Shown here: piece by piece, positions 3,523 through 24,000 of the stretch
Layout of the letters: each line of letters starts with the position of its first letter
Numbering within the stretch: position 1 is the stretch's first letter
Source: Trichosphaerium sp. ATCC 40318
Taxonomy: Eukaryota; Protista; Tubulinea
DNA length: 64,000 nucleotides
Assembly (NCBI GenBank): GCA_038496445.1
Contig: JALMLS010000216.1
Location: forward strand, 62,001-126,000
Reading direction: 5' to 3'
Notes under the pieces: model-generated
The model's database searches: none
What the model was told of the DNA's origin: nothing
The model's input: the letters and a program-made list of their open reading frames with translations, nothing else
Translations under genes and position numbers: made by a program

Positions 3523-6297
3523 ATGTCACGTGGTCGCAGAGTAATAAAAATACGTAAAACTCGTAGAGTCCAAGCTAAGAGTACCAGTACACCTACAGGT
3601 ATCGCATCAAATTTGTGATGAAACTCTGATTATACTCATTGTGAATCAGAACTTTTTTTTTGGATTTTTATTCTCGTTTACGAATTGATTGATCAATCAA
3701 GATTTTCTTTATCATTCTACTATTTAACAACTAACGCAATATGGATGTACTACAGAAGTACCTTACTATAGATGAGGCTATGAAGTTGTCTCATGCTGAG
3801 CTTAAAAAGAACTGTATCGAAAGAGCTCTTTTTATTACTGGTAAAAAGTCGGTTTTGGCAGCACGTATAGTTGGTACGTCTTGTTTGAGTACATTAAACG
3901 TTTGATGAGTTATTAAGTTTAACTTATCTACCTAGAACACGACATCAATACAGGTCCTTTGGAAGACTTAGCGCATGCTCGTAGGACAATGGCTATCTCG
4001 AAGTCGAAATACGACGTACAGGCAGAAAAGCGCAAGTTGGCAGCTGCCAAGCGTACACGTGCTGTAGAAAAGAGCTCTAAAGGAGCTAAGCCAGAGGAAC
4101 CGGAACTCAAACGGCAAAAACTTGAGGAACGTTTCAATCAATTGGAACAAACCATGAAAGAGAAGCATGCTAGCTTAGAAAATAAGCTGGAAAACAAGTA
4201 TGGTCTATTGGAAGGCACGGTTCAGGCAATGGGATCACTCATACTTCTAATGCAACTTGAAATGTTGTCATCGCAGTATAGAGACTCCAAAATCTCTGCG
4301 TTGGTTGGTAAAGGTACGTTGTTATTGAGTAATCGTCATGCACCATTCTAATGAAATGTATTAGATTACTGGGTTACTTGTGATGATATTAGACGGAATA
4401 AAGAAACCGAATGTGTTCCGTATTTCTTTGATGAAGAAGAAGCTTCAAGATACGAAGGAAATTTGCTTATTCCTTATGAAGAGTATGAAGTAACTCCCGG
4501 GAAAAAACAACAACAGGAAAAGGTGTATACCAGGCAGCTTTTCAAGCAGTTTTGTGGTAAACAACAAGGTAGAAAGCGAGCTACTATCTTCGAACATCTG
4601 GCTCCTTTCAATACGCACGAAACTTGCGTAAAGCAAAGCGAAGACATTGGAGCAAGGAAATTCAAACCTGATATTTCCTTTGTTGATAAAAAAGCTCGTT
4701 TTGCTGATTTACACGTGTTGCACGTGGTCGTACCTTTGGAGATTAAAGGTTAGTTATGTTATTTTTGTTTCTCAACCTCTAACTCCGTTTATAGTCAAAA
4801 ACTTGGACTACAATACTCAAGGACAGACGTGGCATTATATACACCAGGTACACTATACTTAGGAGCCAATGATTCTATCATGGCTCTTTGATTCCATATT
4901 ATCTTTGGAAGCTTACTTTTTCGCTTTTTTTGTAGATTATGCTTAGACAAAAGTTACGAACTGTGTGCTATGGGGCCTTACTAAATAAAAAGGATGTAAT
5001 GTTCCTTAAAATGGAAATGCCACCTGATGGTCATAGTCCTCCAAAGTAAGTTGTTAATGAATTGCTTTCGTTTAGCTTCAAGCTCTTTCTTTTCGTGTAG
5101 TAGCCACCAATTATCTATTAGGTACTCTTATACGTTGAAGTACCCGTTGTACAAGATATCCAAGCAACGTCGTAAAGTGAAGGGAGATCAATACAAGGAC
5201 TATGCTTTGGACGTACCAGATTTTTATGGTCAAAAACTGCTCAGGCATTTTTTGTCCCAAACACCAGAGACATACGGATGGAAAGTCCCTCATTTTGATA
5301 TTAAAGGTAAAAGCTATACTCCACACACCGTCCTTGGCATGGGTGCTTCAAGGTATGGTTTTATTTGGAAGCTTCTCATACCCTCATACAACAGTTGTTT
5401 ATTTTTGTTATCATAGTATTGTTTATGGCATTAATCGGGTGACTAAGGAGAGTGGAAAGGAACTGATAGCAGTCAAACAACTTCTCAGCGATAGCGAAAC
5501 TTTTCGTGCTATGATGAAACGTGAGCAAACTGTACTATTAGAGCTTAATGAATGTGAATACATTCCCAATCAGGTACTTAGAAGAATGTTATGATTTACT
5601 TAAGAAAAATGTAGATCTATGCATCGTCTGATATGCACTTTTTTCTCAGTCCTGTGGCGTTTCCTCTTGACTCTGAGCAATATTTTAAAAACGTTACTTG
5701 GCTATTACAGGTAGTTGATGGCCTGAAATATGCACATGACCACAACATTGTTCACAGGTCCTCTTATTATTTTTTTTTAACTTGTAAGACTTATTATGTC
5801 ATAGGGATATCTGCCCGGGCAACCTGTTGATAACTGCCGCTCCGAATGAGAGAGCCATTATAATTGATTGGGGCATAAGTGTTGGTATTAACGAGAGCGC
5901 ACCAATGGAAGGAACCCTTGTATACGCACCTCTAGATTTAGTAGAACATTTCGACGGAAAACAAAATTACAAAGTCGGCCGTAGTTATGACTTGTTGTGC
6001 CTTGTTCAAGTAGTTCTTTACTACATAAGGTTTACTAAAGAAAAGAGAGCATATATGAGACAACTATACAACGATTGGGTTCGTAGAAGGGCAGGCAAGA
6101 AAGTTGCCAAATGGTCAAATGAAAGAGACATTCGTTTAGAGATGCTGAAGCAATGGCCTCTTCCGAATAGTAAGTGGAAGAAAATTATTGACGCTGCTTG
6201 CGATGCAGACTACGAAAGATTAAAAGAAAAGTTTGTAGATGCTCTTATGTCCAAGCAAGGAGTATATAAGAAAAAACCTTCTTTTACACTTGGATAA
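3523..6297 (+). CDS. SAP domain + coiled coil + PD-(D/E)xK nuclease-like domain + protein kinase (Crinkler/CR-effector-like)
   Basis: SAP-like LSHAELKKNCIERALFITGKKSVLAARI; REase motif KPDISF...VPLEIK. Kinase motifs LGMGASSIVY, AVKQ, HRDICPGNLLI and IIIDWG assemble across GT-AG introns. Confidence 0.75.
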
Positions 6298-6854
6298 ATC
6301 AATGCAACGGTGTTACATCATTGACCTTTTACGCAACTTAATTAATGTTGTGTACACCTGATAGTACTTTGATACTCATTATTAAGTGTCGAGCTTATAG
6401 TATGACACCCTTACCAACAGCAGACAAATTAATAGTGTGCACCAGCCAGTGCATGGACACCTTCAGCAGTTAGTCTATGAGGTATGACTATTTTGTGACG
6501 CCAGCAAGTAATTACAATTGGGCTATCTGTTAGAGTAACCCAAGCAAACTTCTGTAGTAAAGGCTTCGTAAAGTCTGGCTAGTTCAACTTCGTTTCTTAC
6601 CCTAATGCATACAGAATCCGACGTGCATCAAGACATATGTTAGGGCTGAATAGCGTAGCCGTGTATTTCATAATATGAACAAAAATTTCAAAGCCTACAA
6701 CTCAAATTTATCCTTAATATAGACTCTATTGAAAGCGATTGTAACTATTACTAAGTATGGAGTAGAATATAAGAATTTTCTTGTTTATACCAGCACGGTG
6801 ATGTAGCCGTGCTTTATTCTTGTTTTTGTACATGTATCGGAAATAAAATAAAAT

Positions 6855-9231
6855 TTAGTACGTTTCTGCCATTTCATGTGCTGATGCGAACGTCTTGATG
6901 TCCAACGACTCAGCACCAGTGAGTTTACTAACAATAGCAGCAGCTACAGTATCTATAGGGACACTATGAGATGGGGGTTTTTTGAAAGAAAAAAGAAGTC
7001 AAGTTGTCTTTTCAATATCACGTGATCGTACCTCCTAAAAAAGTAAATTAGAACGCAAGCTACAATAATGGGGGATTGTCCGTACCATAAACGTTTGTTG
7101 CAGTTCGAAGTCGATCCAAAAACCAATCGATACTTAAAAGTAAACCAATAGAATCGTCTACAGGCAAACCAACTGCTGTCAACACGATAACGATTGTAAC
7201 CAAGCCTTAATGCTTGTTAATTGAAGAAGGCTTTTCTGTAGTGACTTACCCGCTTCGGGTATCCCTGCAGCACCTATTGATGCTAAAGTAGACGTTAAGG
7301 CAATCACTAGTAACTGGACAGCATTCAATGGAACACCGACAATTTGGGCTATAAAAAAGTTAGCAGCCGTGTTAATCAACTGAGGTCACCTATAAATATT
7401 GCTGCGACTGCCTCATAAAGCGCAGTACCATCCATGGATATACTAATATACAACTTATTAATAACATACGACTTGATGTCATTCTCACGTGGCCCCAAGC
7501 GGTAGAACAAAACTATATATTCTCTTTGGTATTCCTTGAGTTTTAACACACTAAAAGTCATCTTTCAATACAAGCCGAGGTTTAACTGGTATGTGTCCGC
7601 ATAAGTATTTACTTACCTCTTCAGTAACAGGTAATGTTGCAGATGAACTAGCAATACCCAACGCAGTCAAAAGAGCAGGTGTCATAGCTACAAAAAGTTA
7701 CCAAAAAAATGCTTCTAATTGGTCTAAACACATACCAAAGAGATATTTGAGGGGATTCTTTCTTACGAATATGAGATATAATCCAGGTAATACAAATAAG
7801 AAATGAACTGCCAAACCAACAACCACAGTTGCAACGAACATACTTTTAAACAAGTTAATTGGTTGATAAATTGCTCTAAAACAGTGGAAAATTTACCCTA
7901 AAATATCACGTTATGTAACGACAACCGATAACAGCTTACCTAGTTGCGAAAGCAAAACCAGAAAGTTATCTGTACTGGCTAATTTACTTGTTATGAGCGA
8001 CATTATACCTAAAGGTACAAACCAGAGTACTAAAACAACATCAATATTATGCCAGTAAAAAAAACTAAAAAACTAGTTTCCGTACTCCAGTTTACTATTA
8101 CGTAGACAACAGCGCTGAGTCCTCTAAAAATACCAATTATAGGTCTTGCTTTTTTACCAATCGCTATGAGCGCTACAATAATAATAAGTTCATCCATAAA
8201 AAAACGTGATGATATTACCAAGAGCAAATACGATTGAAGCAGTAATTATTGCTAAAATGTTGAAATTAGCAGCTTCTTTAACGATATTCTCTGGTGTCAA
8301 ATCCTCTAGTATACTGAATATATTATACACTGTTGACTCTACTGTAGTTTGATTCGATATAGGCGGAAGCGTTACTACAAAATGGTTAAAGGCAAATAAA
8401 AATTATTTTATTAAAATTGCCTTCAGTGGGAGGTAAGGCATCCTTTCCAGCGTTTCCAGGTTGGAGTAGCGTAACCCACATGATACCTGAAACAACTACT
8501 TAGAAGATTGTAAGAACATGGCATTTTACCCATAGCAACTGCTATGACGGACGTAGAGATGTAGTAAACAACTGAATATAAACCAACTCTTCTATAAAAA
8601 CAATACTGTCAAAAAAAAAGTGGATAAAAAATATGCAAAGAACTCACCCTGCCGTTGATATATTACCACTTGTTACACCGTCGATAATAGTAACAGGAAT
8701 AAGGAGTAGAACAATGCCTTTTTTATATGTTGATAATTCATGCCGAAAACAGCAACGATAATTTTTTCTTTACTTACTTTTTAGCATACGTAGCAGTAGC
8801 TTGCCTGGGAATGCAAGAATCTCTATAACAAATTCACTTGGTTTGGCCTGAGCAACCTAGGTTAATCACTTTAGATATTTAACGTTTGGACAAAAAAAGA
8901 TATGTGTGTACACCAAAGCCAATGGCTATGCCCAAAATGATACCAGCGCACGTGAAGAAAAGTTGAAAAAAGTTAATTTTTTTTGCCAACTCCGAATGCA
9001 CGCAAGCACAGCAACGTTTGCGCTCACGTGCTAAACATAAAAATCAGTAAGATCTTTAACAGAATAATCCTCTTTTGAAAAAAAAAACCTGAGGATGCTT
9101 GTACCAGAATAACTACTTCTTTGTGAGCTTCCTGTTAATAAATAATCGCTTTCATCGGGTGTACGTTCCAGTTCGATACTTACACTATCTGGATAAGATC
9201 TTATAAGCTCTATGCTCTCACTTGATAGCAT
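6855..9231 (-). CDS. SLC1/DAACS dicarboxylate-amino acid:cation symporter (EAAT-like)
   Basis: Motifs [57 protein letters not shown] and [16 protein letters not shown]. Confidence 0.92.
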
Positions 9232-14065: not shown

Positions 14066-14509
14066 TTACCAGATTGGATTCAATACTTCCAATACATCGT
14101 ATTCCCAAGTTAAACGAATATAAGCCTTTTTAAGTCCTTTGGGTGTTATGAGAGTTCGAACTCTTTCTACTTTTACATAATACTTTTGTTCAAAAGCATT
14201 TTTTATCTGGTGTTTGTTCGCTCTTCTGTCTACTATAAATGTTGCTGTGTTTAAGTGTTCTACTTTGTTTAAGGCATGTTCAGTTGTCACAGGGTATCTC
14301 AACACATCTGCTATATGTAGCGTTGTTTTCTTAGGAATGGCTTTCTTTGGGTAAATTGGTTTGCGTTGGTGTCTTTGAGTTTTCTTGCGCTTGAACGACG
14401 GCTTTGAGAATCGGTTGAGTTGTTTTTTACAGTTTAAATTTTTCGTTTGTTGTTTCTTTGTATGTAGTGCTTTAGCAGCTGCTTCTTCCCTAGTTTGTTG
14501 TTCTGCCAT
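14066..14509 (-). CDS. RPL23A: 60S ribosomal protein L23a (uL23), divergent copy
   Basis: RYPVTTEHA, NTATFIVDRRANKHQIKNAF and VRTLITPKGLKKAYIRL, with a basic N-terminal extension. A 5'UTR intron acceptor (CTAAC...TGTAG) lies just upstream of the ATG. Confidence 0.93.
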   Translation of the reverse strand: MAEQQTREEAAAKALHTKKQQTKNLNCKKQLNRFSKPSFKRKKTQRHQRKPIYPKKAIPKKTTLHIADVLRYPVTTEHALNKVEHLNTATFIVDRRANKHQIKNAFEQKYYVKVERVRTLITPKGLKKAYIRLTWEYDVLEVLNPIW

Positions 14510-15148: not shown

Positions 15149-17788
15149 TTAGTACTTTATTTTAAGCTTCTTTCTGATGCCTTGCCTATGAGTGTTCTGC
15201 TTACGCTTCTGTCCTGCACGGACATCATGAAAGTTGGCATACGATTTTGGCTACAAGTACACAGAGTGAGTTTTTTTGAAATCTTTGATTCAAAAAAGAA
15301 AAAAAAAGCAAGCGGATACGTACCTTATCTTTCTCTTCTCTACGCTTGATGAGCTCTTTCTCAATAGCCTTGATAAGAGTCCTTTGATTTTCAGGTTTAA
15401 CATACTCTTCTGTACTACTTGTAAAGTACGAAGCACCATCAGTTTGGACATCAACAACATATCCATGATCTTCTAAGAAACCTCTACGCTTCGCAGCATA
15501 ATTTACTTCCTCAGTCTCTGTTGAAACAAGGGAATAGAAGTGTGCTTCTTCTTTTCCTTCAAAAGGTCTTTGAATACGTCCTATACGTTGTCCTTCTTGC
15601 ATACGAGACCCGTCTGTCAAACCAAGTTGAATCACAACGTCAGCACTAGGTAAATCGATAGACTGATCTCCGACTTTACTAAGAAGGATGCGGTTTATGC
15701 TATCCACTCCGCTTGACCTTCTGAACCTGGACAAGATACGTGCACGCTCTTCCGTGGCTGTATTACCGTCTACCATGTCCCATTCTAAAACAGAAGTAAG
15801 AGGCAAATGATAGAAAAGCTTGGCGTACTAAGGAGATGAGAATACCAATGTAAACTGAAGATTGAGTCGCAAAATATGATAACTTTGCTACCAGCCTTTG
15901 CATGCTTTGTTACTAGCTCATACATAACGCGTGTTTTGTTAGGATTGCACATGTACAACAACCGACGTTCTTCCATAAAGTCAGAGCTATAACGAATCAG
16001 ATAAGCTAAAGTCCAACTTACATAAAAAAGGAAAAAAGTACATTTGATGTCTTTCTTTGAACTTAATTGCCATTGGAACACGGATCTCATGACAGCGAAC
16101 AGGAGCAATGTGTCCACGCATCCTAAAGATATTCGTTACAAGAACCGTACTTAAAAAGAAATTAAGGTAATCGTACTGTAGAGTGAAGATATCGAGCTCA
16201 TACAATGTTGGACCAACGAGATAAGGTAGTTCAGGGATTAGATTATCCTCACGAACCATCGTTGCAGTTAATCCGAGCTTAACATGACATTTTATTTGAT
16301 TTGTTACTTTCCTAGGGATTGTTAAAAGACTGTAAAATTAAATAAAAGAAAAAAGCGGTACCTGAAAATCTTTGCTGGTGCAAGATGCACTTCATCTAGT
16401 ACCATGATACCCCAGACACGTTCTTTACATTGTCTCATAGTCTGTAGAGAATCCTCTTTCCTGCCAGTTTGCGTGGAGAACATACTGTACGTTGTAACGA
16501 CGATGTTGGCACTAGATATGTCAGTTTAATGATCTTGATATTGACTTTGATAGCGTACTTGGCATCCCACTCTGCACGATGAAGCGAAGCAAATCGAGAT
16601 ATCTGCTTATCACGAACAGCAGCAAACTTTTTGAATTGCTCTTTCCACTGCGTCACTGCAAGAGCAGATTGACAAAACACAATAGCATTCAACTACAAGT
16701 AATGTTAGTTAGATGATTTTTACACTAAAAAGAAAAAGAAAAAAAAAAAAGAAAAACTATTCGTACCTTGCACAACGCAACGGCGTTTATACCGATTAAG
16801 GTCTTTCCAGCACCACAAGGTAGAACCAAGACACCAGAGTGCATCTTATAACCGTTCCAGAATAAACTGTGACTACTGTGGAGTTGGTAATCCCTCAACT
16901 TTATCTCAGGCCGGATGTTTATGCTACACAATAATAAATTAGTGTTGTGTATTGTAGCAGTTCCTTGTACTTTATCTTTGATGCTTCTGTATGGCTACCA
17001 AGTTCATATTCTTCTATTATAGGATACCCATTATGATAGCATATACGTTTGACGGATTCTGCTTGCTCAGGAGAGATTTCAAATCCGAAATATTCTCTTG
17101 AATCTAAATTGCTTTAGTTTTTGTTTTTTCAAAATCCAAAACGTACCGTCTCCGTAGTACTTGTTAACAACCCTATTAGGACAGTATCTATCCAAAGCAG
17201 GGATTGACTTTATTTTAACAATCAAGTCTTGATCTGGTGCTTGAACAAAGTACTTTGTGTCCCTATTGAGTAATAAAATGTTAAGAAAAACATTTTCATT
17301 TACTGACGTACCTCAACACTAATAGTAGCTCGTAGTATGTGTTTGTCGTGTATTTTCGTATGAGCCTGTGTAGTTTAACGGGCATTATCTCGTTTGATAG
17401 ATATCCTACTAGTCTGACAATCTCCTTGGCATTGTAACCTGAAAAAAGAAAAAGAATAAGCAAACGAATAACAAATTACAGGCACGTGAAGGAAAAAAAA
17501 AGAAGGATGTAGGTTGAGAATAAAAACACCGATATCTTGACACATACCTCTTGAATACGCCAAGAAAAGAGATAACGGTGTTATCTCATACAAGTAGTAT
17601 TTTGCATCTACGATCTTCTTAAATTCAGCAACACTGTCAAGCAACTCTTTTGCTAAAGCAATGCCACGTTCTCGTTGTAGAATAGGTAACTGTTTGACTA
17701 CAGGTAACAAAATTTCTACCATCTTATCTTCTGCTTCTCCATATACTAGAGGATGGCAATTAAAGTCTTCCATGATTTCTTCTTCAAG
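15149..17788 (-). CDS. ERCC3: XPB/ERCC3/Ssl2-family SF2 DNA translocase module
   Basis: XPB N-terminal domain (YEITPLSLFLAYSRG...LVLRDTKYFVQ), LRDYQ, Walker A LPCGAGKT, QWKEQF, Walker B LDEVH, LGLTATMVRED, LYMCNPNK, SKVGDQSIDLP and QRIGRIQR. Confidence 0.95.
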
Positions 17789-19878
17789 CTTTATTGAAAA
17801 AAACCAGATAAGCAAAACAGAAAACTATGCAAACTCTGTAGGTACCTCCATTTTGGCGCTTCCAGCTTTATTTGCAGAACCAACAGCCTTAGAGTTTCTA
17901 GCTTCAGGCTTACCACGTCTTCGTGATCGTGACTTAGTTGCTTGACGCCTAGGTGCTACAGTCTTGCGAACAGTTCGTTTATATTGTTTACCTATCGCTC
18001 TCATTACATTCTTTAAAAATATTGTAGTTGTGATACGTACCTCCTTTATCGAGGTTAGCCAAGTCGTCTAATCTATCTTTTAGAGGTTGTATGATGTTTT
18101 TTAGCTCTTTCAGAGATAGTTCTAGTAATTGAAGCTTCTCTCGATTATTAGTTCTTATCAGCTCACTGTCACAGCCCATTATATCACAATGGTACTTTCC
18201 AGTTGCTCTATTCTTAACACGCTCGAGTTGCAAGGTCCTGAAATGCTTCTTGCATGGAGTGCAGTAGAGTACTTGATCTCTAACCTGCTCTATTTCCTCT
18301 TCAAGGTTTTTTTCCATAGATAGGACACGGTAATTTACAGCGTCAACAAACTTGTCCAAGTCAATTGACCAAACATTAAACATTCTTCCATAGCCTTTTT
18401 TGGCTGTTGTCTTTTTAGGCTCGACAGCCGTTCTACATTTTCCTGTCAGCTCAAATACAATGATATTCTGTCGTTACGTACCTAGTAATCAACTTGTGGC
18501 CATTTAGGATATTCAAAGCCTTACTAACTTGTTTTGCTGGTAGTTGTAATTCGGCATATAAATCTTTTTCTCGAAATCTAATAACAAAAGCATGTTAGAG
18601 CAAATACCAATAACATTCAAACACGTGAAATAAAATTAAAGTAGAACACGTACAATTTCTTTTCAACGAACTTGTAAAGGGTAAGAATATAGCTATCTTC
18701 GCTATAGAACCACGTAGCAACAATAGCGAGGAGATCAACAACTTTTTCAAATTCAGTAGGATTTGCATCTCCATTGTGTAACACAATGTGCTTTTGTTTT
18801 TTGGCAGAGTCTTCTTCTGTAGATGGCAAGAAATCGAAGTTTGTATCAAGCTTTAACACGTGTTCTTCGCCACCTTGGCTTTGATGTTGCATACTGAATA
18901 GGATCAGTTTCAAAGTAAATTTTTTGTATGTTTAAAATCTTACCGGAGGTGAGCCGCGAGGGCTTGCAAGTCAGCATCAGCAGCAGAGGTCTTACGCTTG
19001 GTACTTCTTCGCCGCTTTGGAGCGTCTTGATATAACTCTGGTTGTACGTTGCAGTCGAGTTTCGATAGTTGGCGATTGTTATCTCTACACGCAATTAAAA
19101 ACCACCAAAAAAATAATGATTGATAAACTCGTACGCTAAGAATTGTCTCAGGTCAACGAAATCAACCTTGGCGACATTGTTCCATAATCTCTGTAGTGTC
19201 CTTGCTATCGGTACTAGAGTAATAGGTGGATTCACGTGATTTAACGACGGCCTCAAATACAAAAACTACACAACAACATTTTAGTAAGAATACGGCGGTG
19301 TACGGCTTGTACCAAGTTTTTGCTGACGCTGTGTTTGACTGTAAGTATTTTAAGGTCTTCGTGAAGCTCCTATAGCAATCTAATCAGTTCTCACTCGTCA
19401 CACGTTCGAAACGTCAAAAAAAAAAGCTTGGCCAACTGCGCAAAAAAAACCGGCAAGATAAAAATTGACTTCATTCGGTAGAAGCAAAAATATGGGTTAG
19501 AAGGCTTTGCTGAAAATTACTCATGTTCAAATTACTCATAGATTACTTCCGTACAGCTATAAAGTCGTCAATTCCATCGTACGCAGTGGTCGTTTCTTCA
19601 TCTACCTCCATTATCCTGTCTTTTTTCAAAATTTGCAGTATATCATCAGCGCTATCGATACGATACTTGTGTTTGTATTGAATATGCCCAGTATTGGGAT
19701 CATACTCCAACTGGCTGTTTGCTTTTAACAGTTCAAGGAGCGGTACGGTTATTATAATTCCGAGGCTCTGTTGAATTTCTGCCATTGTTAACCCGGCAGG
19801 GTTCTTTTTTAACGCTAGAACAACCTCAAAATGTTGCGTGCCCAGGTGGGGTTGTCCAGACCCTTCTGGAGCGGACAT
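15149..19878 (-). CDS. Predicted TFIIE-beta / TFIIE-alpha / XPB (ERCC3, Ssl2) triple fusion protein
   Basis: Every inter-domain junction is a canonical, phase-compatible intron: 19554-19370, 19312-19266, 19134-19085, 18943-18894, 18040-17992 and 17845-17789. There are no in-frame stops across these junctions after splicing. Confidence 0.75.
18041..18893 (-). CDS. GTF2E1: TFIIE alpha subunit module (Tfa1/GTF2E1-like): extended winged helix + Zn ribbon
   Basis: LLAIVATWFY...FREKDLYAELQLPAKQVSKALNILNGHKLI...WSIDLDKFVDAVNYRV...YCTPCKKHF...YHCDIMGCDSEL...IQPLKDRL. Confidence 0.87.
18940..19878 (-). CDS. GTF2E2: TFIIE beta subunit module (Tfa2/GTF2E2-like)
   Basis: Winged helices LLELLKANSQLEYDPNTGHIQYKHKYRIDSADDILQILKK, then spliced LQRLWNNVAKVDFVDLRQFL and a basic KRRRSTKRK tail. 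Confidence 0.85.
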
Positions 19879-20410: not shown

Positions 20411-20970
20411 TTATTTCTTTTTTGTCCATTTTCTGAAGGCGTTGTTGATGTTTATAATATCAGAGGCACTAATACTTGCTTCTTTGCCTAGTTTTTCACT
20501 TTCAAACGTCATTAGCTGTTTTAAAAACCCTCTATTGGGCTGAATACCCTTTCGCTTTGTTTTTACAGTTATGATAGCGTCTCTCAGCGACATGTCACTG
20601 CCGTGCATCAAATACGCAATTACCACCGCTGGAGACCTACTAACACCACCTGAAGGCGTCAGTATGATTTAAAGAGTTATTTATCGCTACCTGAGCAATG
20701 TACAAGCACTTTGTGCTTGCCTCTCTTCAGTTTGTCTAAAAAAGTAAAAATATCTTGTAGCAAGCTTAAAATATCCGCTTCTGCGTTGTCTGTTATATGA
20801 CATTGCTTGTACGTGAATTTACTAGGATATAAGCATTTGCCAGCCAAGTTTACAATGTGAGTAATTCCAAGTTGTTCTAACCCCTCTGACGCCTTTGCTG
20901 CGCGAACACTCCCAAGAAAAAGGAAGTTATCTATAATTTGAGTACAGTCTATGTTTTTACGCCGAGCCAT
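20411..20970 (-). CDS. Atypical dual-specificity protein phosphatase
   Basis: TQIIDNFLFLGS, GITHIVN, spliced VHCSGGVSRS, AYLM and IQPNRGFLKQL. Confidence 0.92.
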
Positions 20971-21093
20971 GTAGTGTACAGTAGTACGAGAGTACTTTAT
21001 AACGTCAGCTTTTGCTGTAATCGTCAATACAATTCAGTTCAGATAACAGTATCACGAAGAAAACAGTTTTTTTTTATTAAGTTTTCTTTCACA

Positions 21094-24000
21094 CTAGTTC
21101 TGTTATAACAAGATCATCATTACAAGATACAACAAGTGTAAAACTGGCTTCTTTTTTGGCATCAAAAGTACACGGTATTATAGCATAATTACCTGGAGCC
21201 AACTCAACTAGTTTTTTGCCTAGAAATTTGGTAAATTTTTTTCAAATGCCGTGGTTGTGACCAATTTGAAATAAAATACGAAAGGTTAGGATGACGTACA
21301 TTCGCGTGGATCACCAAACTTTCCTTTATCGACAACATTATTAGCTGTAACCTTTGCAAGGTGACCTTGAATAAAGAATTAGATCAAAGTTGAATCGTCT
21401 CCGTAAATTAGTCATGTATTGAAGGTACCTGTTGCATTTGGTCCTCGCTTGACCAAGTAAAATGAGATGGCATCAAAGTGTTCTCTCTCCTGCAAAAGAA
21501 GAACTTCGAGCTTCGTCTTCTTTGAGAGCTTGAACCCATACTGTGGATTCTTTTCGAATGTTGCATGATTACGACATCCTCCTGCGGTTACGCCTTTCCA
21601 AGAACCCTAAATATCCCGATCAATATAGGAAAAGAGCACGTACAAGTGATCAATGCCAAAAACTATAAAGCAATCATTGGTACCTCAAGAGTATATTTGT
21701 TCCAATCTTTTGAATCATCAATTAGCTCTACTTTGACTTCTGTATCTGAATAAACTGCCATAGAGAATGGGCGCTCTTCATTAGGGTCATAAGTACATGG
21801 CATAATCACATATGGTGTATCTGACGCCGGTAATTTCATCTCAACAGTAACTAAAAGAGCCAATCAATTAAAATGAACAAAGTTAATTTTGTACCTCTTT
21901 CACGTGTTAAAAATCTAGAACTCTTTACAATCTGAGAATCGTTCCATAGTATTCTATGTGCTATAAAAAACCATTAAGAAAGGCCTCGTAGAAATATTTG
22001 ATGTTCGTCTTAGTTCACGTACGTTTTGATTCTCTTGTTTTAAATACATAAAATCCAATACTGGACATTGCCTTACCAGCAATTTGTGTAAGTTGTAACA
22101 AGACATTTGCTGTCTTGGTGACATAAACAAATATTTGATGGTTCCAACGCCACGTGAGATAATTCATACAACCACCAGCGCTTTTATCTTTCCAACTCTG
22201 CTCTACCATCAATTCTTTTCCTAAAGGAAAAAAATAAGAAAAAGTCAAAAAGCGAGTTTCTTATTTTAAACATACCGGAGATGCTTCCAACTCCTGATAA
22301 TTTATCTCCCTTGAACTCATCTTCTTTATCGTCAAGTCCTTCATCTGCTTCTATACCAAGAGCAGCTTCCATAGCTACAATTATTTCAAACGTTTGCTTC
22401 TTTTCCGCCTACAACAAAAAAATCAAAACCCTTCTTTTTAACTCTGTAACAAGTTCAATAAAAATATGCGTACAGCCCAATCAGGTTCGCGTTTGGCAGC
22501 GCGTCTATTATCATATTGTATCTCTCTTAACTTTGTGACATTTTTAGATAGTTCTGCGTTATTGTTTCTTTTAGAGAACTCAGCAAGCCTAAAGTTGGGT
22601 TAATTTTAAAATTAAGATGTTTTCATCTACTAACCTATCTTTATCTTTTTTAAGTTGAATTATCTCCTCTCTTAACTTTTGAATCTCTTTTAGTTTTTCG
22701 CCTATTTCCTTTGTTGATTCAAGATTTTTGATCTTTTCTTCCAGTAGGAGCTTCTTTTGGTCTTCTGTCTTTTGTACTTGCTTCTTATACTTTTGTTTAT
22801 CCTATCATACTGCTAAGTACACTATAATAAAGAGTTTTAAAGTACTCACCGATATATAGTTAACCAAGACACCTTGTGAAATCCATTTTGATGTACCCTT
22901 TCCAATAATTCTACGATTACTCCAAATACTTAGCTCAAAGCGTGATGTGAACCCTGGTTCGTGTGTAGATGGAATAATACAGTAGAATCCAGGGTTAAGA
23001 TGCATGATTCCAATCGCTATTGATTATTAACATCACAATAATGGCAAAGAAAACTAAACAAGAAGTACCTTCATAAGGACCTTTAAACTCTGACGTAAAT
23101 AAAATGTCCTTCTGTCTGATACGATCTGGTGGTTGCTCACCTATACGCTCATTAATCAAGGGATCTTAACGAGTAAATAGAGCCACGTACCTTCTATTGT
23201 GGCAACATAAAATCCAACATTATTAAACTTCGTTTTTTTAGTTTGAGATAAAACCATTGTAACCTTATCAGTAATTTCTGCAACGTTAATAACATAACGA
23301 GGGTTTGATTTCCATGAGCGATTAGGTTTAGATCCTCCAGCACTATCTTTATTCCACCGACCCTACACAAAGACCTTTAAGAGACTGTAACAAGAGTGGT
23401 AAAAAAATGCCATGTTTTTGACACCGAAGCATTTCAAGAATCTTCGAATACGTACACCAACAGTCAAGTCATACCAATCCTCTTCTGGTGTAATCTCTTT
23501 TAATACACCTTTATCACAAGACAACTTAAAATCGCCGATAAAACCAGGTTCAAAGGTAGCAGGCATAACTAAAATATTGACTTAGAAAAAAAAGAATGGT
23601 TTGTTTGCATTCTCATTAGCGCTGCAAACTCGAAATCAGCACGTACTAATGAATGGTGAGTCAGTGCCTTCAAGCACAGCGTCGATGTACACTACAGTAG
23701 ATGAGCATACGCAATTTTAGGCCAATTTAAAAGCTTTTTTGTAGTAAAGCTCCAAAAACGACAATTTCGCCCTGAGCAAAAAACAAACTATAAAATGATA
23801 CGTTTTATGCGTCAGAGATTGTTTTGTTAAAAAAACTTACCAACGTTTGTTGTTTGAAACTTTGACTGTTCAACGATATGTTCAGCGTTAAGAATCTTAC
23901 GGCCAGTGCCTTAGTGAAGCTGTTAGCGTGAAGTGCAGTTTTACTTGTGAAAAAGAGAAAAGCACGCCTACCATCTTTGCGGAAAATGTACAAGCCTATG

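Follow-up and report, generated by a model that had tools for sequence, protein, structure and literature searches.

On the minus strand of a 64,000-nt stretch of genomic DNA from Trichosphaerium sp. ATCC 40318 (hereinafter designated the window), a TFIIE-beta module, a TFIIE-alpha module and an XPB-type module follow one another, and between the first two lies a short segment that opens with an in-frame stop codon and is followed almost at once by an ATG. The arrangement raises the question of whether this segment is an intron within one gene, a spacer between two genes, or an intron whose retention could release free TFIIE-beta. From comparative sequence analysis, we consider it probable that 18943-18894 is an ordinary intron within a single, conserved gene for a beta-alpha-XPB fusion. 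The features on which the argument draws are as follows; the paralog is the second copy of the gene in the same genome (locus L003).

18944-19878, minus strand: TFIIE-beta module, with its ATG at 19878, a Pfam TFIIE_beta match (E 2e-9) and exon lengths identical in the paralog
19878-19555, 19369-19313, 19265-19135 and 19084-18944, minus strand: beta exons 1-4, separated by introns of 185, 47 and 50 nt
18944-19084, minus strand: last TFIIE-beta exon (141 nt), encoding ...DNNRQLSKLDCNVQPELYQDAPKRRRSTKRKTSAADADLQALAAHL and the first two bases of an Arg codon
18894-18943, minus strand: junction intron (50 nt, phase 2, donor GTAAGA, acceptor TTCAG), with a branch-like motif CTGAT whose A lies 10 nt from the 3' end
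18940-18942, minus strand: TAA that is in frame upon retention, at donor positions +2 to +4 (TAG in the paralog)
18890-18892, minus strand: ATG, the first full codon past the acceptor, a predicted internal and unconserved Met of the fusion
18654-18893, minus strand: first TFIIE-alpha exon (240 nt), encoding MQHQSQGGEEHVLKLD...HNGDANPTEFEKVVDLL...
18577-18482 and 18432-18041, minus strand: alpha exons 2 and 3, which flank intron 18481-18433 and encode the winged helix and the zinc ribbon
17992-18040, minus strand: alpha-linker intron (49 nt, phase 1, GTACGT..GATAG), kept in position in the paralog (L003 3778-3825)
17846-17991, minus strand: 146-nt exon encoding the basic alpha-XPB linker, in frame in both copies
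17789-17845, minus strand: intron before the XPB module (57 nt, phase 0, GTACCT..AAAG)
15330-17788, minus strand: XPB-type module as mapped, down to 15330, with ten further introns mapped to 15785 and their positions kept in the paralog

Direct reading and string search place the end of beta exon 4 (...GCT CAC CTC CG) at 18944. The 50-nt junction intron that follows (GTAAGATTTTAAACATACAAAAAATTTACTTTGAAACTGATCCTATTCAG) runs from GTAAGA to ...AACTGATCCTATTCAG and leads into T ATG CAA CAT CAA. Left unspliced, the sequence reads CGG TAA in frame, with the TAA at 18942-18940; spliced, it reads CG/T ATG CAA CAT CAA, again in frame, with the ATG at 18892-18890, one base past the acceptor and 47 nt from the TAA. 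An Arg is retained at the junction codon in either case (CGG or CGT), and the splice product reads ...AAHL-R-MQHQSQGG..., while retention of the junction intron is predicted to yield a free beta protein of 218 aa. The original prediction had named this very stop and ATG, CGG TAA unspliced versus CGT ATG spliced on the minus strand, and its reading was exact. It had also proposed that retaining intron 18040-17992 leads to a stop at 17988 and gives TFIIE without XPB, and upon retention the sequence does read ...GAT AGG TAA, with the stop at 17990-17988.

The identity of the three modules was examined by database searches with single exons. Beta exon 1 matches PF02186 (TFIIE_beta) with 38 bits (E 2e-9; cut-off 28.1). 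Alpha exons 2 and 3 match positions 29-57 and 70-102 of the TFIIE_alpha profile weakly (Pfam, E 0.017-0.043), and the alpha module gives phmmer E values of 1.8e-17 to 1.5e-10 against proteins that themselves score above the PF02002 cut-off. The XPB module contains PF16203 matches (at C13:77333-78012) and is 34-60% identical, exon by exon, to a fusion protein of Rhizamoeba saxonica (local tblastn). Six-frame searches of the genome with PF02002 and PF13625 gave no match because these domains are split by introns. That the locus encodes one beta-alpha-XPB chain is supported by the in-frame GT-AG joins, from which we infer the single chain.

The 70.3-Mb genome (642 contigs) contains exactly two TFIIE_beta loci and two alpha-like loci, all of them within fused genes. 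The paralog, on contig C66, has the complete beta-alpha-XPB arrangement and the same 18 intron positions as the window copy, and its flanks show no synteny with the window. Exons of the two copies are equal in length or differ by 3 nt, whereas intron lengths vary freely (185 versus 145, 50 versus 38 and 57 versus 44 nt in window and paralog, respectively). The last beta exon has the same length in both copies (L003 2751-2891) with 67% amino-acid identity, and each of the four indels in the linker exon spans a multiple of 3 nt, at a dN/dS of 0.5. Across the beta, alpha and XPB N-terminal exons dN/dS is 0.10-0.25 (0.12 in alpha exon 1), while dS exceeds 1 and synonymous sites are saturated, which indicates that the copies are old and that both are under purifying selection.

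The junction intron itself is present in the paralog (L003 2892-2929, 38 nt) at the same phase and codon position, between flanking exons of 141 and 240 nt, and the sequence there reads CTT CG/GTAGGT...CTAAG...TTCAG/A GGG GGA CTT CAA AGC. Its interior is only 54% identical to that of the window intron and differs by a 12-nt indel, the lowest identity among the eight beta, alpha and linker introns compared. Given the low dN/dS and a dS that exceeds 1, selection has preserved the frame together with the GT and AG while the interior drifted. The ATG past the acceptor is absent from the paralog, where GGG stands in its place and alpha starts R/GGLQSQGGEE, and alpha exons 1 and 2 of this copy contain no ATG in frame. 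Similarly, the window's possible XPB start, I-M-E-D-F, corresponds to I-V-E-Y-F in the paralog, the ATG being replaced by GTT. With no ATG at the starts of these modules, the alpha and XPB parts of the paralog are translatable only via splicing to beta.

Some other introns of the two copies show peculiarities of their own. The paralog's homologue of window intron 16361-16312 (L003 5361-5412) seems to begin with GC (GCATGT..TATAG), and may be a GC-AG intron or reflect a mapped boundary that is slightly off. The first beta intron is long in both copies (window 19370-19554, 185 nt; L003 2319-2463, 145 nt) compared with about 50 nt elsewhere, and it holds a patch of inter-copy similarity, near ...TTTTCAGC.A..CTT.T.ACC..., that has no open coding frame and might serve as an alternative acceptor or belong to an embedded element. 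There is no need to postulate a hidden micro-exon within this 185-nt intron, as the second winged helix is read without a break across the join of exons 1 and 2.

When alpha exon 3 was used as a phmmer query against 1.84 billion representative sequences, 26 proteins were retrieved, and the best long matches (726-1227 aa, E down to 1.8e-17) bear both TFIIE_alpha and XPB domains. Identity of alpha exon 3 to the fusion proteins is only 27-39%, and the nearest fusion homologues are amoebozoan. A 1213-aa Trinity ORF from Vermamoeba vermiformis (EP00029_P003137, P0029) carries TFIIE_beta, TFA2_Winged_2, TFIIE_alpha and XPB domains, and a 996-aa Trinity ORF from Rhizamoeba saxonica (EP01130_P017819, P0002) carries the beta C-terminus, alpha and XPB. 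Both of these amoeba transcriptome ORFs run uninterrupted across the beta-alpha boundary. Together with the metagenome/Logan sequences P0001, P0006, P0009 and P0010, these amoebal fusions have the same module order as the window: a basic C-terminal stretch of beta and an LxALA motif run straight into the alpha N-terminus (HN..ANPEEF), and a basic or Ser-rich linker then leads to XPB.

The genomic copies of the relatives differ from the window in that the boundary is a continuous ORF where the window has an intron. This holds for the genomic contigs of all six relatives (L004, L005, L006, L007, L009 and L011), in each of which the beta C-terminus continues into the alpha N-terminus without a break; in L004, aa 111-1227 lie in one exon. 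L009 and L011 lack an intron at the site used in the window but have one some 30 residues to the 3' side, directly preceding the HN..ANPEEW motif. In protein alignments the last beta exon of the window aligns with the beta C-terminal part of the relatives' fusion proteins and alpha exon 1 with their alpha N-terminal part, and the two exon ends abut on uninterrupted relative sequence. Between the LxALA motif region and HVLK, the window has 10 residues and P0006 has 13. No aligned relative has a Met at the site of the window's ATG, which is occupied by L, F or other residues. Taken together with the paralog and the selection on both copies, this shows the fusion to be old, hard-wired and earlier than the window's lineage, whereas the junction intron is specific to that lineage.

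The L004 sequence (NCBI GCA_023897955.2, contig JAKZLS010000286.1) is a 1227-aa fusion; its record assigns it, as an uncharacterized protein, to the locust Schistocerca gregaria. The locus lies on a 343-kb contig, has a GC content of 57% and contains one intron only. Given the amoebozoan relatives, the contig may derive from an associated protist rather than from the insect.

We compared the junction intron with the other introns of both copies (n = 34), most of which are 40-77 nt long, apart from three longer ones (109, 145 and 185 nt). The junction intron shows features of a spliceosomal GT-AG intron, namely its ends, the frame, the local length and branch motif, and a kept position with a diverged interior. 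It shares with the ordinary U2-type GT-AG introns of the gene the GT..AG ends, the GTA donor, the length and a CTRAY-like branch 10-11 nt from the 3' end; several of the other introns likewise have the branch A 10 nt from that end. It differs from the ordinary introns of the gene in sitting exactly on a module boundary and, in both copies, in having A or G instead of C at +4 and CAG instead of TAG at the acceptor. A C at +4 is found in 25 of the other 34 introns and a TAG acceptor in 32, whereas both junction introns combine A or G at +4 with CAG. In a crude window-wide set of 51 filtered candidates, to be taken as a rough guide since the ORF-pair intron finder is too noisy for a clean consensus, about 29% have A or G at +4 and about 18% have CAG. 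The junction-intron splice scores of 9.3-9.4 bits rank fifth to sixth lowest of 36 in a leave-one-out scoring, which puts them in the lowest quarter, though not outside the range spanned by the other introns.

Neither the stop nor the ATG is as distinctive as it seems at first. A phase-2 donor that begins GTAA or GTAG creates an in-frame stop automatically; two of the 18 other phase-2 introns of the two copies have a stop at the donor as well, and 23 of the 34 other introns, if retained, would end translation within the intron itself. Nor is the ATG unique as the first full codon past an acceptor: intron 16176-16123 is followed by one in both copies, as is the second beta intron of the paralog. 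At the former, a phase-2 intron of the XPB module (window 16123-16176, L003 5548-5594), the sequence continues G/ATG in both copies, within Q-M-R-G-H; an ATG one base past the acceptor is thus not rare in this gene. The donor stop and the ATG past the acceptor therefore look like coincidences rather than a switch.

In our preferred reading, the U2-type GT-AG intron 18943-18894 would be removed from the pre-mRNA of one gene, whose product would carry TFIIE-beta, TFIIE-alpha and an XPB-type translocase in one chain. The in-frame TAA would then be a by-product of the phase-2 GTAAG donor, and the ATG at 18892-18890 an internal, unconserved Met codon. The intron was probably inserted into an already continuous coding sequence, in an ancestor of the two copies in this genome. 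We infer that splicing is efficient and constitutive in this organism, although the scores of 9.3-9.4 bits make some retention plausible, and the GTA[A/G]G...TTCAG signals and in-frame stop shared by both copies could reflect a constraint beyond plain splicing.

Because a stop and an ATG are both present in the window copy, beta and alpha might instead be separate adjacent genes, beta ending with TAA at 18940, alpha starting with ATG at 18892, and 47 nt of unspliced spacer lying between them. The original prediction had kept such a spacer in play on the ground that tandem genes in the window can be about 120 nt apart, and a pair of this kind is indeed found, with about 121 nt between a stop near 21092 and the ATG at 20970. 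A gap of 47 nt, by comparison, would be too short to accommodate a 3' end and a promoter in a 70-Mb genome; the supposed spacer has full intron signals at a typical length of 50 nt; all relatives encode one chain; and the paralog lacks the ATG yet retains the same architecture under purifying selection. Two genes 47 nt apart are contradicted for the paralog, which has no such ATG, and unparsimonious for the window copy, and we hold this arrangement to be highly improbable. A trans-splicing or operon reading has no support. There is only a slim chance that the segment is a fossil, that is, a remnant of a former beta-alpha intergenic spacer that became an intron when the genes fused, which would be compatible with constitutive splicing today. 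Its position at the module boundary, its initial stop in both copies and the ATG after it in one of them would fit such an origin. Nevertheless, all six relatives with genomic sequence lack an intron at this site, and their boundary is continuous coding sequence of similar length (10 versus 13 residues), so that the intron appears to be an insertion into coding sequence that replaces no linker. This disfavours the fossil-spacer origin that had been suggested.

It had further been suggested that one locus could make free beta, beta-alpha and the full-length protein through a regulated splice switch, in which partial retention of the junction intron would yield free TFIIE-beta and retention of 18040-17992 would yield beta-alpha without XPB. 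We regard such a switch as unlikely. Retention does bring an immediate stop in both copies (TAA and TAG), no stand-alone beta or alpha gene is present in the genome, and the junction introns of both copies share the atypical GTA[A/G]G..TTCAG signals and lower-quartile splice scores, with A or G at +4 being found in about 15% of the gene's other donors and about 30% of the crude window-wide set. The two copies share ancestry, however, and their shared signal type does not amount to two independent observations, while an early stop upon retention is generic for the gene (23 of 34 other introns). Transcripts with a stop upstream of 14 exon junctions, as here, are normally destabilised by nonsense-mediated decay, which counts against a switch. 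Inter-copy comparison of the intron revealed no conserved regulatory sequence (54% identity with a 12-nt indel), and no conserved downstream start for a separate alpha product was found in the paralog, which has GGG, or in the relatives, which have no Met. The likeness to regulated intron retention and detained introns lies in truncation at a domain boundary; it does not extend to a conserved intronic sequence, a downstream start, or an intron at the site in relatives. With the ATG and the intron interior unconserved, and with six relatives that have no intron at the site and whose conserved function thus needs no switch, the proposal of three products from one locus is not borne out. A narrower version, in which the junction intron is a conserved, tunable retention point whose donor stop and minority GTA[A/G]G...TTCAG signals have outlasted synonymous saturation, with some transcripts giving free TFIIE-beta, is in our estimate rather improbable. 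If a retention switch did exist, free TFIIE-beta could arise in this organism by no other route. Overall, what stands of the original prediction is that the 50-nt segment is an intron linking beta to alpha in frame, the neighbouring introns linking alpha to XPB; the splice switch is not supported and the fossil spacer is disfavoured.

With the ordinary-intron reading preferred, the value of the junction lies in the evidence it provides that beta-alpha-XPB really is one gene, since a paralog without a start codon and the uninterrupted ORF of the relatives together rule out an annotation artefact. The fusion draws on the same domain families as canonical TFIIE (human GTF2E1/GTF2E2, yeast Tfa1/Tfa2) and the TFIIH subunit XPB/Ssl2. 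It differs from those separate TFIIE subunits and XPB/Ssl2 in that the three modules lie in one gene, with a stand-alone XPB gene encoded in addition. The literature searched yielded no description of a natural TFIIE-XPB fusion. A single-chain TFIIE and XPB-type motor beside a separate canonical XPB would constitute a natural experiment in tethering promoter-opening factors.

The stand-alone gene is a third XPB-type locus, G000:C227:12128-12768 (L008 about 4100-7135, minus strand), which has the best PF16203 score in the genome and XPB N-terminal (Helicase_C_3) exons of its own. No TFIIE match was present in the few ORFs scanned upstream of it. This gene probably encodes the canonical XPB of TFIIH, and the fused motors would then be additional paralogues.

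Two further loci on the minus strand of the window are of note. At 20970-21094, an upstream gene (...ITELV, stop) is followed after only about 121 nt by a dual-specificity-phosphatase-like gene with its ATG, which implies that intergenic spacers in this genome can be very short. At 14066-14509 lies an intron-less gene for a 147-aa ribosomal protein uL23, whose best database matches are only about 46% identical, indicating that no close relative of the organism is represented in the protein collection.
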